Positions 12,857-42,633 of a stretch of 42,633 nucleotides of DNA are shown here, piece after piece (position 1 is the stretch's first letter; each line of letters opens with the position of its first letter). The DNA lies in assembly GCA_000388065.2 (NCBI GenBank), contig KB932212.1; one strand, given 5' to 3'. The notes under the pieces are model-generated. The model was not told where the DNA came from. It saw only the letters and a program-made list of their open reading frames with translations, and made no database searches. The translations under genes were made by a program, and so were the position numbers. This DNA comes from Fonticula alba ATCC 38817. Lineage: Eukaryota > Protista > Nucleariida.

Positions 12857-15176
12857 ATGTCCGCGGCCTCCGACACTGCCCCCGATGACCAGTCGGTCAC
12901 CTTCGACACGGCTGGGCTGAGCTTTGCCTCCGGGGAAGCCCGGCCCTTCGGCGACCCGACCCCCGCCGGCAGCCCCGGCCTGCTGGCGTCCGACGCGGGC
13001 CCCGGCCTGCGGCCCTCGCAAACCGAGTACTCCAGCCTCCTGGATGGCGATGTGTCCGGCTCCGGCGACGCCTCCCAAGCTGGGCAGAAGTTCAGCGACG
13101 TGTACGACTTCGAGTCGGACCTGCAGGAGCGCCTCGACGCCACGAGCACCATCTTCAACGACGAAAACATCGTCCCCAGCGACTCGACCCTGCGCGTGGC
13201 CGAGGGCGTGGCGCGCATGCGCTTCTCCGTCTTCAACCTGGTCAACACCATTGTCGGCGGCGGCCTCCTGTCTCTGCTCTTCGCCATGCGCGTGCGTGTC
13301 ACCCACACCAGCCCCCGGGCCTGCGGCGCGCCTCGCCCCCTCCTCGCCTCTCTCTCTCTCTCTCTATCTATCTCTTCCCCCCACGCGCCCTGACCCTTTG
13401 CCCACTCCGCTCGACCGACAGCTCCTCGGCATTGTCCTCGGCCCGATGGCCCTGGCGGTTGTCTGCGTGGGGTCCATCTTCTCGCTCCACCTGCTGACCG
13501 AATGCGGCGAGCTGGCCCTGCTCAAGTCCCGGGCCTCCTACAGTGTCCTGGCCCGGCTGGCCCTCGGCCGCATTGGGCTCCTCTACTCGGACATTTGCAT
13601 GATTCTCTCCTGCTTCGGCGTGGCCACCTCCTACTTGGTGATTTTCGGCGACACGATCGCCCCGCTGATCGCCTCCTCGGACCCCACCTCCGGCGGCATG
13701 TCCTTCACCACCACGCACCGGATGCTGGTCGGGTGTGCCCTGCTGGTGGTCCTGCCGCTGTCCTCGCTCCGGCACCTGAACGCCCTGCGCCACTTCAGCC
13801 TCTTCGCCATCACCGCCTCCCTCTTCTTCATTGTTTGCGTTGTCGTGCGCAGTGTCCAGGAGATGGTCACCGTGGGCTTCACCGACTGTGCCACCACCAC
13901 CGCCGGCTGTCCGGAGTACTTCAACACCAACCCCAGCCAGATGCTCAGTGCCATTCGTACGTGCCCGGGCATCNNNNNNNNNNNNNNNCCCCCCATGATG
14001 GGCCCCTGATCGTTGCCCCCGCTGTTGTGTGTCCATCTCACACCCTTCGGGCGGGCCGCATGTGCCGACACACTTGACACCCCCTGTGCTCTCCTCCCCC
14101 TCCTCCTCCTCCTCCTCCTCGACCCCCTTCCCTGACCTCCCTCCTTTTCCCGGGTGCTGCCGTCGCTGCCCCTTTCCTCGACACAGCGCTCATCTGCTTC
14201 GCCTTCACCTGCCAAATGAACTTCTTCAGCACCTATGGAGAGATGAAGCTGCCCAACACCCGGCGCATCCACAAGGTCATCAACCGGTGCGTGTCCCCTC
14301 CCTCCCGCCCTCTGCCCCGCCGCCGCCGCCGCCGCCGCCGCTCCTTGCGGAAATGCGTCCGAAGAAGGGGCCAGCCCCCCTTCACATCCACTGATGCTGA
14401 CCCTTTTCCATTGCAGTGCCATGATCGTGGCCATTTCCGTCTACCTGGTGGCCTCGGTTTTCGGGTACCTGCACTTCCGCGCGGACATCCTGAGCAACAT
14501 CCTGCTCAATTACCCGGCCGACGATATGCTCCTGCTGTTTGGCCGGATCGGTGCGCCACATCGCGCCCCCCTCCCCCCCCCCCTCCCTCCTCCTCCTCTC
14601 TCCTGCCCTGTGCGCCTCCCTCGTCGCCTCCTCCCGCTGACTCCGGCCCCCATTTGCTCCCTTGCCCTGCATGTGACCGTGCGCTGGCATGTAGCCATCG
14701 CGATCGAAATTCTCCTCGGCGCCCCGATGGCCGTGCACCCCCTGCTGGCCACCCTTGACCGCCTGCTCTTCCCGGACAAGGAATTCTCCTGGACCCGGTA
14801 TGTTAGCTTGCTTGGGGCATTTGCCCGGCGCTCCCCTCTTCCTCCCTCTGGCCCACGGTCGCCACACATGCTAACTCGTCGAGAATGCCACGCGGCGCCA
14901 TCCCCCCCCCCCCCCAGTCGTATCATCTCGCTGCTGGTGGTTTTCTCCCTGGCCGTGACCCTGGCCATGACGGTGGCCGACATTGGCTTCCTCTTCGGCT
15001 TGACTGGTGCCACTGCCTCCACGTCCATTGCCTTCATCCTGCCGGCCCTTTTCTACATTCGACTGTCCTCGAACCAGCCCCTCTGGAAGGGCAAGCGCCT
15101 GGCGGCCCTGGTGCTGGCCGTGGTCGGCGTGGCCCTCTCCATCGCGGCCACCGTGGCAACCATCATGGAGAAGTGA
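12857..15176 (+). CDS. Amino acid transporter, Aa_trans (SLC38/AVT) family, 6 exons, about 521 aa
   Basis: Exons 12857-13291, 13422-13956, 14187-14286, 14417-14550, 14695-14797, 14918-15176; phases close. Motifs SVFNLVNTIVGGGLLS, SYSVLARLALG, FGVATSYLVIFGD, AIPLICFAFTCQMNF, FGYLHF..DILSNILLNY, FLFGLTGATAS..FILPALFY; multiple hydrophobic TM segments. Confidence 0.92.
13974..13988. other. Assembly gap (N) in SLC38 intron 2
   Basis: N run. Confidence 1.
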
Positions 15177-15721: not shown

Positions 15722-16897
15722 TCACTCCCCGCGAAGGCCGTTGAGGCGCTGCTGGAGCTGCAGGTGGCAGAAAGGGAAGAAAAGGAGCGTAAGTGACGGG
15801 GAGAGCACACAGCAGGGGGAGTGGGGGGGGGGGGGGGGCGACAGGAATGCAAACACATTGACATACCTGACGGTCGAGATCGTCCTCCTTTTGCCCGGGC
15901 TGCGGGGTCGTCCCGACGGGCGTGGCGCCGAGCTGTGCGTTGCATACGTCCATGCGAGATCGAGGCGGGAGGGCGGAAATGCAGGGGGCATACACTGCGA
16001 TTAGCAACGACCCATGGTGGGAGAGGCTGGAGAGGGAGGAGTGGCCGGCCATTCGCTTGTCCCCNNNNNNNNNNNNNNNNNNNNNNNNNNNNNNNNNNNN
16101 NNNNNNNNNNNNNNNNCCCCCCGCGCACGACATGACAGAAGCAAGAAAAGGGCCAGGGAGAACACGCGCACCTGCTCGGAGATGGAGATGCCGGCCTCCT
16201 CGAGGACTTGGGAGAGGATCTGGTTGGACTCCTCCTCCTCATCGCCATCCTCATCCAGCACGTCGTCGATGGCGTCGCCCATCATCTCCTCCTTGTGGCT
16301 CATCATCTCGGACTCGCGCTCGAAGTCCTGCATGATCTTCTGGATGGCCGGCATCTTGAGGTTGTTGTTGAGCGAGCGCATGGCCTTGGTCACGCCGCCC
16401 ATGGCCTGCGCCATGGCCTGAGTTGAACGCATGGTCTGGTTCCATCAAGGGGGGGGGGGGGGGGTCGGTTAGCGGCGGCCACACGCGTAGAGACGCCCGA
16501 CAACCGGCATCTGATAGCGGCGTACCTGCATCTTCAGGCTGACAGCCTGGAGGTGGGTGCGCATCTGGATGAACTTCTGCACGTAGCGCCGGGTCCGGAC
16601 GATGTCCTTGGCCATGATCTGGCAGGTCTTCTGCAAACGCGGGCGGAGGAAAGAGGGGTGGTGAGAAAGGAACCATCCAAATACCCTGGCATCCTAGGTG
16701 AAGGGGCGGGCGAGGCACCCGAGGACACGCACGGTCTGGCCCTGCTTGGCAAAGCGCCGAATGTCGGCCATGAGCTTCTTCTCCTGGTTCTCGAGCTTGG
16801 CGCGCTCGCGGTCCAGCTCGCGCATCGAGCGGTCCAGCGCGCGCTGGTACCGCCGGACCATCTGCTCGGGGGTCTCCTTCTTGCCGAAAATCCACAT
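15722..16897 (-). CDS. CHMP2A: ESCRT-III subunit CHMP2A/Vps2 (Snf7 family), 5 exons, about 211 aa
   Basis: Exons 16897-16733, 16630-16526, 16435-16172, 15932-15867, 15757-15722. MWIFGKKETPEQMVRRYQRALDRSMRELDRER, MRSTQAMAQAMGGVTKAM, KIMQDFERESEMM..KEEMMGDAIDD, and a C-terminal MIM1-like DLDRQLQQRLNGLR. Confidence 0.95.
16065..16116. other. Assembly gap (N) in CHMP2 intron 3
   Basis: N run flanked by C runs. Confidence 1.
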
Positions 16898-17414: not shown

Positions 17415-17529
17415 NNNNNNNNNNNNNNNNNNNNNNNNNNNNNNNNNNNNNNNNNNNNNNNNNNNNNNNNNNNNNNNNNNNNNNNNNNNNNNNNNNNNNN
17501 NNNNNNNNNNNNNNNNNNNNNNNNNNNNN
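17415..17529. other. Assembly gap (N), intergenic
   Basis: N run after a G run. Confidence 1.
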
Positions 17530-32206: not shown

Positions 32207-32216
32207 NNNNNNNNNN
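32207..32216. other. Assembly gap (N) with duplicated flanks
   Basis: cgagcgttgtg + poly-C appears on both sides of the gap. Confidence 1.
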
Positions 32217-32675: not shown

Positions 32676-34072
32676 ATGTACGCCGAGGGAACGCCCAGCT
32701 TCGCCTCCGGCTCGCAGGTGTCCCCACTCGTGGCGGCCCAGGCATCGCCCCTGCTACAGCCAGCGCCATCCAACTGGGACTCCCTCCTCCAAGAGGTGCG
32801 CTCGGCTGCCCCCCCCCCAGCCCGAGTCAGCCCGCTGTTCGCGCGCGCGCNNNNNNNNNNNNNNNNNNNNNNNNNNNNNNNNNNNNNNNNNNNNNNNNNN
32901 NNNNNNNNNNNNNNNNNNNNNNNNNNNNNNNNNNNNNNNNNNNNNNNNNNNNNNNNNNNNNNNNNNNNNNNNNNNNNNNNNNNNNNNNNNNNNNNNNNNN
33001 NNNNNNCCCCCCCCCCTCCGCCACAGGCCCGGCGAGTCGAGGTCTCACTCGAGCAGAGCATCAATGCCTACAACTCTCTGGCGCGGTCGTACCTGGAGTC
33101 TGGCCCCGGGCCGGACCCCACGTCGCAGCCTGGGACGCAGTATTCGGAGCGGGAGAAGCTCTGCCTCCCCGAGGGACCCATCCCGGTGAAGATTCAGCAG
33201 TATCTGGCGGAGGTCCGTGCGATGGCGTTCCAAGGCTTGCCGCCTCCGCAATGGGCTGCCCGACTGACAAACTCTGCCGGCCGCCCCCTTCCCCGACCGC
33301 CCAGCTGAGGCGCATCGTGGAAAGCATGGAAAAGTACCAGGCGCACCACATGGGCGATGGTGGGGACCCGACCGGCGGCCAGACGACCGCCTCCACGGTA
33401 GCCGTCTTCCTCCGGCGCTACCGCGAAAGCGTGGCCAAGTACGAGATGATCTACCGGCGGAACCTGGACCGGGTGCTGGCCAAGTCCAAGCGCACGGGCC
33501 TGCTGGCTGGGACGGCCGGGCAGCCGGGTTCCACGGCCGGCGGCGCCTCCTCCGGGCTCCTGGTCACCGGTCTCAACCACTTGGATCAGTCGAATCAGCA
33601 AGCGTTGGATCTGCTTGAGTGCGTGTCATGCCATCTGCGCCTCCGGTGTGCCCGTCTGGCTGTCTTTGTGCTAACGCGCGGCCCTCCGCGCCACCATCCT
33701 CCGCGGGCCCTTTCTTTTCCTCCCCTCCTGCAGCCAAGCACACGAAGCGCACGAGGCCCTCATCACCCAGCGCGAAATGCTGAACCGGGCACATGGCCGT
33801 GTGGCCAACATCAACAGTACGCACACCCGGCACACCGGGCTCTGTGTGCCGCTGCCGCGGCTGACGTTGTCCCCTCCCCCCCCCTGCCGCTCGCCTCTGC
33901 CGCTTGTTCCTCCATTGGTGACTGACGCCCGCACGCCCCCGGCAACCCAGGCCGCCTGCCGCGGATCAATGCGCTGTTGAAGAAGATCAAGCGGCGGAAA
34001 AAGCGCGAGACCCTCATCCTCGGCGCGGTGGCCGGCTTCTGCCTCTTCCTGGTGGTGCTGTTTCTCTTCTGA
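32676..34072 (+). CDS. GOSR1: Golgi SNARE GOS1/GOSR1 (Qb), 5 exons, about 274 aa
   Basis: Exons 32676-32795, 33027-33212, 33305-33618, 33734-33816, 33951-34072; intron 1 contains an N gap. WDSLLQEARRVEVSLEQSINAY, EALITQREML, RLPRINALLKKIKRRKKRETLILGAVAGFCLFLVVLFLF (tail anchor). Confidence 0.88.
32851..33006. other. Assembly gap (N) in GOS1 intron 1
   Basis: N run. Confidence 1.
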
Positions 34073-35939: not shown

Positions 35940-36316
35940 NNNNNNNNNNNNNNNNNNNNNNNNNNNNNNNNNNNNNNNNNNNNNNNNNNNNNNNNNNNNN
36001 NNNNNNNNNNNNNNNNNNNNNNNNNNNNNNNNNNNNNNNNNNNNNNNNNNNNNNNNNNNNNNNNNNNNNNNNNNNNNNNNNNNNNNNNNNNNNNNNNNNN
36101 NNNNNNNNNNNNNNNNNNNNNNNNNNNNNNNNNNNNNNNNNNNNNNNNNNNNNNNNNNNNNNNNNNNNNNNNNNNNNNNNNNNNNNNNNNNNNNNNNNNN
36201 NNNNNNNNNNNNNNNNNNNNNNNNNNNNNNNNNNNNNNNNNNNNNNNNNNNNNNNNNNNNNNNNNNNNNNNNNNNNNNNNNNNNNNNNNNNNNNNNNNNN
36301 NNNNNNNNNNNNNNNG
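35940..36316. other. Assembly gap (N), intergenic
   Basis: N run flanked by G runs. Confidence 1.
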
Positions 36317-37163: not shown

Positions 37164-37503
37164 NNNNNNNNNNNNNNNNNNNNNNNNNNNNNNNNNNNNN
37201 NNNNNNNNNNNNNNNNNNNNNNNNNNNNNNNNNNNNNNNNNNNNNNNNNNNNNNNNNNNNNNNNNNNNNNNNNNNNNNNNNNNNNNNNNNNNNNNNNNNN
37301 NNNNNNNNNNNNNNNNNNNNNNNNNNNNNNNNNNNNNNNNNNNNNNNNNNNNNNNNNNNNNNNNNNNNNNNNNNNNNNNNNNNNNNNNNNNNNNNNNNNN
37401 NNNNNNNNNNNNNNNNNNNNNNNNNNNNNNNNNNNNNNNNNNNNNNNNNNNNNNNNNNNNNNNNNNNNNNNNNNNNNNNNNNNNNNNNNNNNNNNNNNNN
37501 NNN
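37164..37503. other. Assembly gap (N) upstream of PHO88
   Basis: N run after a C run. Confidence 1.
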
Positions 37504-41587: not shown

Positions 41588-42159
41588 GTTGGTAAAGGGG
41601 AAGGGGGGGGGGGAGGGAATGAGGGGACAGTCCTCTGTTGGCGAGAAAAGCAGGCGGGGACGGCGGGCGGGGCGTTAGCGGCGACCAGATGGAAAGAGAG
41701 GCGAGGTAGGGCAGGTGGCCGCCACGGATGGCCGCGTGGCGAGCCGGGCCAGGCCAGGCGCGCGGACACAGGGCGGGGACAGGGCCCACCGAGAAAGAGG
41801 GAGCGCCGGGAGGCGAAGGAGGAGGAGGAGGAGGAGGAGGAGGCAGGGCAGAGGGGGGGGGAGCGAGAGGCAGGGAGAGGCGGAGGGGTGAGGAGGGGGG
41901 GGGGGTAGATACAAAATCAGGGGGGATGGGATGGAGCGATGTCCAGACTCGGGGTGCCAGCAACGAGGTGCCCCCCGTCCAGCCGGAGGGGCTGGCGAAA
42001 AGTCGCCACCGTCGGCGGAGCCAGGCCAAGAGGGAGCCGCCCATGTGCGGCCCTTCTCGCCGGGAGTCGCGCCGGGGGCGCACGCGCTTCCGGCCGCCCT
42101 GGGCATACACCGCCAGCCGGCCGACCAACCGGGCGCGCGCGCACACACGCGAGTGGCCC

Positions 42160-42633
42160 TGTAGTGGAATCCCCATGTAAACGATAGATGAAGCAACACG
42201 TGAGTGAATTGCCACACGTGTTACATCGTGGGAATGATAGCATCCCAGAACAGCATTCCTCGGAGAGGAATGCGGGGTAGAACAACAGCCAGGTGGCCGC
42301 CGAGGCCGAGCGGCATAAACGCTCGACCGAGGACGGAGATACGCGGGTGGGCGGGCCCAGCCGCGGGGTTCTCAGTTCCAACCCCTGACCGAGCCCAAAG
42401 GTCAAAAAGGGGGACTCTCGTTGAGAGCCTCCTGAGAGCGAAAGCCTTAGCAGCTGTGTGTCGAAGAGTATACGGAAGTATAGCCGAAGCACCAGTTAGG
42501 CCGACGAACACCTGTTCTAAGGCTTCCTCTCGAACCCTTTTTAACATCCGAGTTCCTTTCTATTTTCGCTTGCCACTAACTCGTCTCAAGCCGAGTTACT
42601 GACTCATCTGGTAACAGACGACCGTGAACCGCT
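42160..42633 (+). ncRNA. Candidate structured RNA or mobile-element terminus, unidentified, truncated by the window end
   Basis: About 55% GC (counted for 42181-42633), with no G/C homopolymer texture. Many inverted repeats, including a long rod at 42404-42542 and GNRA-capped hairpins on the + strand. Family not recognised. Confidence 0.35.

Follow-up and report, generated by a model that had tools for sequence, protein, structure and literature searches.

Fonticula alba, a free-living amoeba, belongs to the opisthokonts and, within them, to the fungal side. Its genome contains elements with long terminal repeats (LTRs), and folds at the ends of retroelements serve strand transfer, priming, and packaging. 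Stem-loops are known in the long R regions of LTRs (PMC3601003). Elements of the Tf1/Tj1 type are self-priming; their RNA anneals by its 5' end to the primer-binding site, and cleavage then releases that end as the primer (PMC4600332). For the repeats of F. alba, a bulk figure of 0.36% is available (bioRxiv 10.64898/2026.06.24.734286). This figure was all that was found in the literature on this species; a family-level description was not found.

Here, we describe the end (positions 42160 to 42633) of a window of 42,633 nt, which is the whole stretch of DNA that was analyzed. We put the probability at about 0.95 that this segment belongs to a Ty3/gypsy-type LTR retrotransposon that was active recently, and that it makes up bases 1 to 474 of the 5' LTR, which is 593 nt long. 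The element is inserted into a G-rich spacer and has duplicated the sequence GGCCC. The LTR family of the window is undescribed. It is of a known type, that of the ordinary LTR.

Composition and folding of the segment

The segment differs from its flank in composition, as the original prediction had noted. The GC content was 54.4% in 42160-42633 and 71.9% in the preceding 1,000 bases. The purine microsatellites of the flank are absent from the segment. The change in composition falls exactly at 42160, which is where the repeat starts. An apparent dip in GC content to 46 to 51% at 36 to 38 kb was also considered. It comes from the N runs at 35940-36315 and 37164-37503 and is nothing biological. 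Other N runs in the window are at 13974-13988, 16065-16116, 17415-17529, 32207-32216, and 32851-33006.

The segment had been described as heavily self-complementary. The listed hairpins are all present in the sequence and in the minimum-free-energy fold of 42160-42633. They were retrieved at 42195-222, 42253-273 (9 bp), 42307-325, 42365-385, 42386-404, and 42577-598, with TCTG-GTAA-CAGA at 42607-18. The fold also contains the nested rod at 42404-42542 with the tip TATAC-GGAA-GTATA. The helices of the rod and hairpins exist, with a few of the short ones one base off in the register first given. The T5 run and the GNRA loops are where they were said to be.

A comparison of folding energy with shuffled controls had been proposed. 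The + strand folded at -178 kcal/mol, compared with -150.4 +/- 6.4 kcal/mol for dinucleotide shuffles (z = -4.3). The minus strand gave a z-score of -4.8. The rod by itself (42400-42546) folded at -55.2 kcal/mol with a z-score of -3.7. The self-complementarity of 42160-42633 is beyond chance, but it is equal on both strands.

Rfam contained no match at gathering scores for the whole 42,633-nt window. At E values of up to 10, the region 41900-42633 gave two chance-level matches only (E 2.6 and 9.9). The SRP-like hints of the original prediction thus find no support in Rfam.

Copies, target-site duplications, and interiors

The genome searched contained 31.3 Mb in 214 contigs. Between 47 and 48 matches to 42160-42633 (at least 45) were retrieved from it, many of them 100% identical. 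The 474 nt of the window are 100% identical to at least six other loci. Comparison of the copies gave a repeat unit of exactly 593 nt, TGTAG...CTACA, which starts at window position 42160. The LTR terminus TGTAG (42160-42164, + strand) and the CTACA at the opposite end are inverted repeats of each other, following the TG...CA rule. These ends are present in every complete copy, and the terminus is also kept in diverged relatives. The window contains bases 1 to 474 of the 593 (42160-42633, + strand) and ends there, and the sequence beyond is N. The left target-site duplication is GGCCC (42155-42159, + strand). GGCCC is found again after the LTR end at C12:351966 (L041), 25,428 bp downstream on the same strand of the contig that carries the window copy.

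Nine complete solo copies were retrieved, each with a perfect 5-bp target-site duplication. The duplications are cgcgc, atctc, ggcac, tcccg, and aaagg at five young solo copies. They are acacc, gaggg, tcgcc, and gccac at four older ones, which are 80 to 90% identical.

Five LTR pairs were retrieved in direct orientation, each with one common 5-bp duplication outside the pair. The pair at C9:1044620-1051400 is flanked by ctgcc and measures 6,781 bp overall. The pair on C12, to which the window copy belongs, is flanked by ggccc. It has about 25.4 kb between its two LTRs, roughly four times the size of the C9 element (6.8 kb). The pair at C1:2311440-2312238 is flanked by cgccc. The pairs L016 (C4:2270955-2272103; cctcc) and L020 (C1:4489587-4490587; cgccg) each contain an LTR, a 10-N run, and a second LTR. 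Each of these two looks like a full-length element in which a scaffold gap of unspecified size has replaced the interior.

Paired LTRs are identical where both are readable (0 differences in 347 nt and 0 in 547 nt). Both LTRs of the C4 pair carry one variant that is found in no other copy. The direct pairs with a common outer duplication, together with the identity within pairs, indicate that these are LTR pairs and that the isolated copies are solo LTRs left by recombination. Comparison of 28 LTR pieces gave 27 variable columns in 595, and the window copy contains no private difference. This near-identity points to very recent activity of the family.

A search for copies and target-site duplications by BLASTN had been suggested as a check on the original prediction. 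With at least 45 copies and 5-bp duplications, it decides for an LTR and against an RNA gene.

A tRNA gene within 1.5 kb was absent at 27 of the 28 copies. The young LTR family is not targeted to tRNA genes. A tRNA-derived SINE was also considered and was rejected. ARAGORN found no tRNA genes in the window, and only 1 of the 28 copies has one nearby.

Contig C40 begins (C40:1-441) inside a young 5' LTR, with a left flank ending in cgacc. At C6:392140-392231, the end of an LTR is followed by cgacc. C40 and C6 probably join across one element. The small contigs that touch an LTR (C82, C40, and C22) contained flanking DNA or more N only.

Everything between the end of the window and C12:351874 is N (C12:327013-351874). 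The interiors of all other young copies, primer-binding site and polypurine tract included, are likewise N, and the point within the LTR at which the N run starts varies. Unrelated elements too break off into N at their LTRs, so many of the runs are probably gaps left where repeats collapsed in the assembly. Since the interiors lie in N runs, the repeat content published for this genome is probably an underestimate.

Older relatives of the LTR were retrieved at 60 to 90% identity and can be aligned from TGTAG to CTACA. One of them, L053 (C1:153500-163400), has retained its interior. It contains a 616-nt 5' LTR (L053:1737-2352) that can be aligned end to end with the LTR of the window. An open frame at L053:5411-7228 encodes RVT_1 (E 4.9e-16), RT_RNaseH (E 6.6e-27), and Integrase_H2C2 (E 1e-14), in that order. 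The order of reverse transcriptase (RT), RNase H, and integrase is that of Ty3/gypsy; it is seen in this older relative, and the interior of the young family is N. By LTR descent from the older relative, with an LTR identity of 67 to 76%, the young family is very probably of the Ty3/gypsy type. RVT_2 gave no match in the genome, though the control genomes also gave none.

The orphan contig C202 (L065) contains 1,077 bp. It encodes an open 317-aa frame with an integrase core. Its DNA is 72 to 75% identical to two old relatives on C1, which is about the distance between the LTRs. On sequence grounds, C202 may represent part of the young family's interior in collapsed form.

Old, nested, and decayed clusters of LTR elements were found at C1:134-163 kb (L053 and L055) and C19:126-148 kb (L054 and L057). 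They contain LTR relatives at 67 to 86% identity and fragments of RT and integrase. Two gypsy-type elements with long open frames of 2,055 and 2,046 aa were found at C14:387300-397200 (L063) and on C42 (L064, the whole contig). The LTR pieces on C14 end in N runs. These two elements were considered as a guide to the young interior and were set aside. Their LTRs and interiors are unrelated in DNA to the window family and to each other.

The 593-nt unit might instead be a non-autonomous element (a MITE, fold-back, or SINE-like element) that moves alone. Most of the readable complete copies are isolated, and they have a 5-nt terminal inverted repeat and 5-bp duplications, as such a unit would. 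The interiors of the young family are all N, which also leaves room for it. We consider it very unlikely, because each of five direct pairs has one outer duplication, the copies within a pair are identical, and the C4 pair has its private variant. In the older relative, RT, RNase H, and integrase follow an equivalent LTR. The terminal inverted repeat spans just 5 nt and obeys the TG...CA rule. The fold-back element end of the original prediction fails for similar reasons; such an end would have long terminal inverted repeats, and the copies here are direct pairs around interiors of several kilobases. A retrotransposon LTR is the preferred reading.

Anatomy and conserved stems of the LTR

Sixteen LTRs were aligned, of which 14 are non-redundant. 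The alignment and the pair counts were made by script, and the copies were compared with no consensus. Measured against the young copy, 15 relatives had a mean identity of 0.49 to 0.70 in the first 160 nt and 0.7 to 0.9 from about 42320. Such a profile, low and then high along the LTR, is usual for U3 followed by R/U5.

The least conserved part of the LTR (42160-42320, + strand) is the probable U3. It contains two CACGTG boxes at 42197-202 and 42215-220 (together 42197-42220, with no strand assigned), which form the hairpin at 42195-222. CACGTG-like boxes are retained in most of the diverged LTRs. They are candidate enhancer or transcription-factor sites of the E-box/G-box type.

The box GGTCAAAAAGGGGG (42400-42413, + strand) is conserved in 13 of the 14 non-redundant relatives. 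It is also the 5' arm of the closing helix of the rod. It may be a TATA-like element about 30 to 40 nt upstream of the candidate transcript start. CATAAA at 42314-20 was rejected as a TATA box. It is not conserved and is merely the loop of a conserved hairpin.

RNAalifold on the 14 LTRs gave -51.5 kcal/mol for the + strand and -54.4 kcal/mol for the minus strand, compared with -20.4 +/- 4.5 kcal/mol for column shuffles. The structure, which was derived from the 14 LTRs themselves, contains 32 compensatory pairs, compared with 16 +/- 4 in column shuffles. It includes the core of the rod (42445-53 with 42512-22, and 42459-63 with 42502-06).

The nested rod (42404-42542, + strand) has a GGAA tetraloop tip at 42474-77. 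The tip loop is of the GNRA type in most relatives (GGAA, GAAA, and GAGA). The closing helix, AAAAAGGG/CCCTTTTT, pairs 42404-11 with 42535-42. It changes from A5G3/C3T5 to A4G4/C4T4 in relatives, with pairing kept. The copy C19b contains an ACAGGG/CCCTGT change in this helix and retains the pairing with 42535-42. The hairpin at 42415-27 changes from CTCTC/GAGAG to CTCCC/GGGAG or TTCCC/GGGAA in relatives. The rod is a putative R-region hairpin of the RNA of the element.

The 9-bp hairpin GCATTCCTC-GGA-GAGGAATGC (42253-42273, + strand) is in the fold, and 4 of its 9 pairs are compensatory among the relatives. Its cells are paired in 86% of cases, compared with 35 to 56% when the partner is slid. 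The hairpin TAACTCG...CGAGTTA (42577-42598, + strand) lies in the probable U5. It has 81% of its cells paired and contains two compensatory pairs. The hairpin TCTG-GTAA-CAGA (42607-42618, + strand) has the loop GTAA here and GAAA in most relatives.

The helices of the original prediction contain 83 G-U cells and 106 A-C cells across the relatives, with no excess of G-U. Comparison of the strands by these counts and by folding both strands found no difference. The LTR stems are probably under selection, to judge from the aligned copies, as RNA or as strong-stop DNA and on either the + or the minus strand. The proposal that the hairpins are functional gains some support from the stems kept by compensatory changes in diverged relatives.

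These stems also bear on another reading, in which a structured RNA gene of the cell (an expanded SRP, telomerase, RNase P-like RNA, ribozyme, or intron) has been multiplied in the genome. The significant folding z-score, the GNRA loops on the + strand, the T5 run, and the compensatory stem changes are what such a gene might show. This reading is refuted by the copy number (at least 45), the target-site duplications, and the direct pairs. Rfam gave no match at gathering scores and chance-level matches otherwise, the minus strand folds equally, and G-U pairs are not in excess. We regard its probability as close to negligible. The original prediction had placed RNA options first, among them an expanded housekeeping RNA and a ribozyme- or intron-like RNA. 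These are not supported, and neither is the fold-back end. Its other options, a retroelement UTR or LTR and the end of a mobile element, agree with the LTR reading.

For an LTR, the following layout is proposed. The first 160 to 280 nt would be U3, with the two CACGTG boxes and the A-rich GGTCAAAAAGGGGG as promoter elements. Transcription would start near 42441. The rod-like hairpin at 42441-42525 would be R or part of R. A T-rich stretch would come next, close to a possible poly(A) site, and the remainder would be U5. The hairpins would then form where the untranslated 5' and 3' ends of the genomic RNA fold, or in strong-stop DNA. The start site, the poly(A) site, and the borders of U3, R, and U5 as placed here are guesses. 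The closing helix and the hairpin at 42415-27 lie upstream of about 42441, so the start may be further upstream, or folding of these parts may be confined to the 3' copy or to DNA.

Priming and comparison with known systems

The older relative L053 contains GCTGCTAAGCTTTT in the 14 nt directly after its 5' LTR. This is the reverse complement of AAAGCCTTAGCAGC (42441-42454, + strand) save for one bulged base (13 of 14), and the match is exact over 9 nt (42446-54). By this complementarity, AAAGCCTTAGCAGC is a candidate self-primer and, tentatively, the start of R. An exact match of 9 nt between the post-LTR sequence of L053 and the young LTR was reached by 8 of 1,000 shuffles. The block 42441-54 is among the best conserved of the LTR (0.84) and lies 30 to 40 nt past the A-rich box. 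It is the 5' arm of the rod, and what follows the LTR in L053 is similar to the 3' arm, CTGTTCTAAGGCTT.

Because it opens with bases other than TGG, the post-LTR sequence of L053 is unlike a primer-binding site of the tRNA 3'-end type. Against its own decayed LTR, it forms 9 pairs with one G-U and one mismatch, which 208 of 1,000 shuffles reach. At the homologous place in a second old element, L055, there was no significant match. In L055, the GCCGC after the LTR and the GCGGC of the 3' LTR would form a compensating pair.

Given that the element is an LTR element, self-priming of the Tf1/Tj1 type has roughly even odds. The RNA 5' end, AAAGCCTTAGCAGC, would leave its partner in the rod and pair with the primer-binding site after the LTR. 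RNase H would cut the paired AAAGCCTTAGCAGC to yield the primer. A more specific version is that this Ty3/gypsy lineage self-primes from an RNA 5' end held in an R hairpin of about 85 nt, the 3' arm of which mimics the primer-binding site. We hold this version only tentatively, at clearly less than an even chance. If it is true, priming needs a switch between two pairings, which would be a hairpin-switch variant. Self-priming of the Tf1 type would also extend to a deep holomycotan branch.

The LTR may equally well be primed by a host tRNA or a tRNA fragment, for which the chances are even. The complementarity of 42441-54 would then be due to chance or would be a contact for dimerization or packaging. 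The self-priming statistics are weak, with 208 of 1,000 shuffles for the LTR of L053 itself, and L055 shows nothing at the homologous place. The proposed transcript start is a guess, and conserved structure lies upstream of it. A tRNA primer is in turn hard to fit to a post-LTR sequence that does not open with TGG. It also leaves the 9-nt exact match (13 of 14 with one bulge) to hit one of the best-conserved blocks of the LTR.

The LTR reading has consequences for annotation. A hairpin-dense island that resembles a new structured RNA is here, in all probability, a retrotransposon LTR, and its other copies in the genome give an equal false lead. The genome carries a very young family, very probably of the Ty3/gypsy type, that has identical LTR pairs and is probably still active. 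For work on how reverse transcription is primed in LTR elements, the stem conservation and the possible self-primer offer a modest lead.

The window family resembles Ty3/gypsy elements (Metaviridae) in its LTRs of a few hundred nucleotides, its TG...CA ends, its 5-bp duplications, and its solo LTRs beside full-length copies. It also resembles them in a variable U3 with conserved R/U5 and in the domain order RVT_1, RT_RNaseH, and Integrase_H2C2 in the older relative. It differs in that its coding part is known from the older relative alone, with the young interior being N. It is of the same general kind as the LTR elements that target tRNA genes (Ty3 and Tj1), but it is not itself targeted to tRNA genes.

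The likeness to retroviral R-region hairpins (TAR and poly(A)) and to the stem-loops of long R regions (PMC3601003) is a stable hairpin between a promoter box and a T-rich stretch. The hairpin of the window is conserved through paired changes in both arms. Unlike in those systems, R is placed here by prediction, and no trans-activator is implied.

The likeness to Tf1 of Schizosaccharomyces pombe, Tj1 of Schizosaccharomyces japonicus, and the sushi-type elements is that the post-LTR sequence of L053 is complementary to a block of the LTR and not to the 3' end of a tRNA. That block lies about 30 to 40 nt after an A-rich box, as would be expected of an RNA 5' end. Unlike in those elements, about 300 nt would separate the primer from the primer-binding site here. 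A long internal hairpin also encloses the candidate primer, and the 3' arm of this hairpin resembles the primer-binding site.
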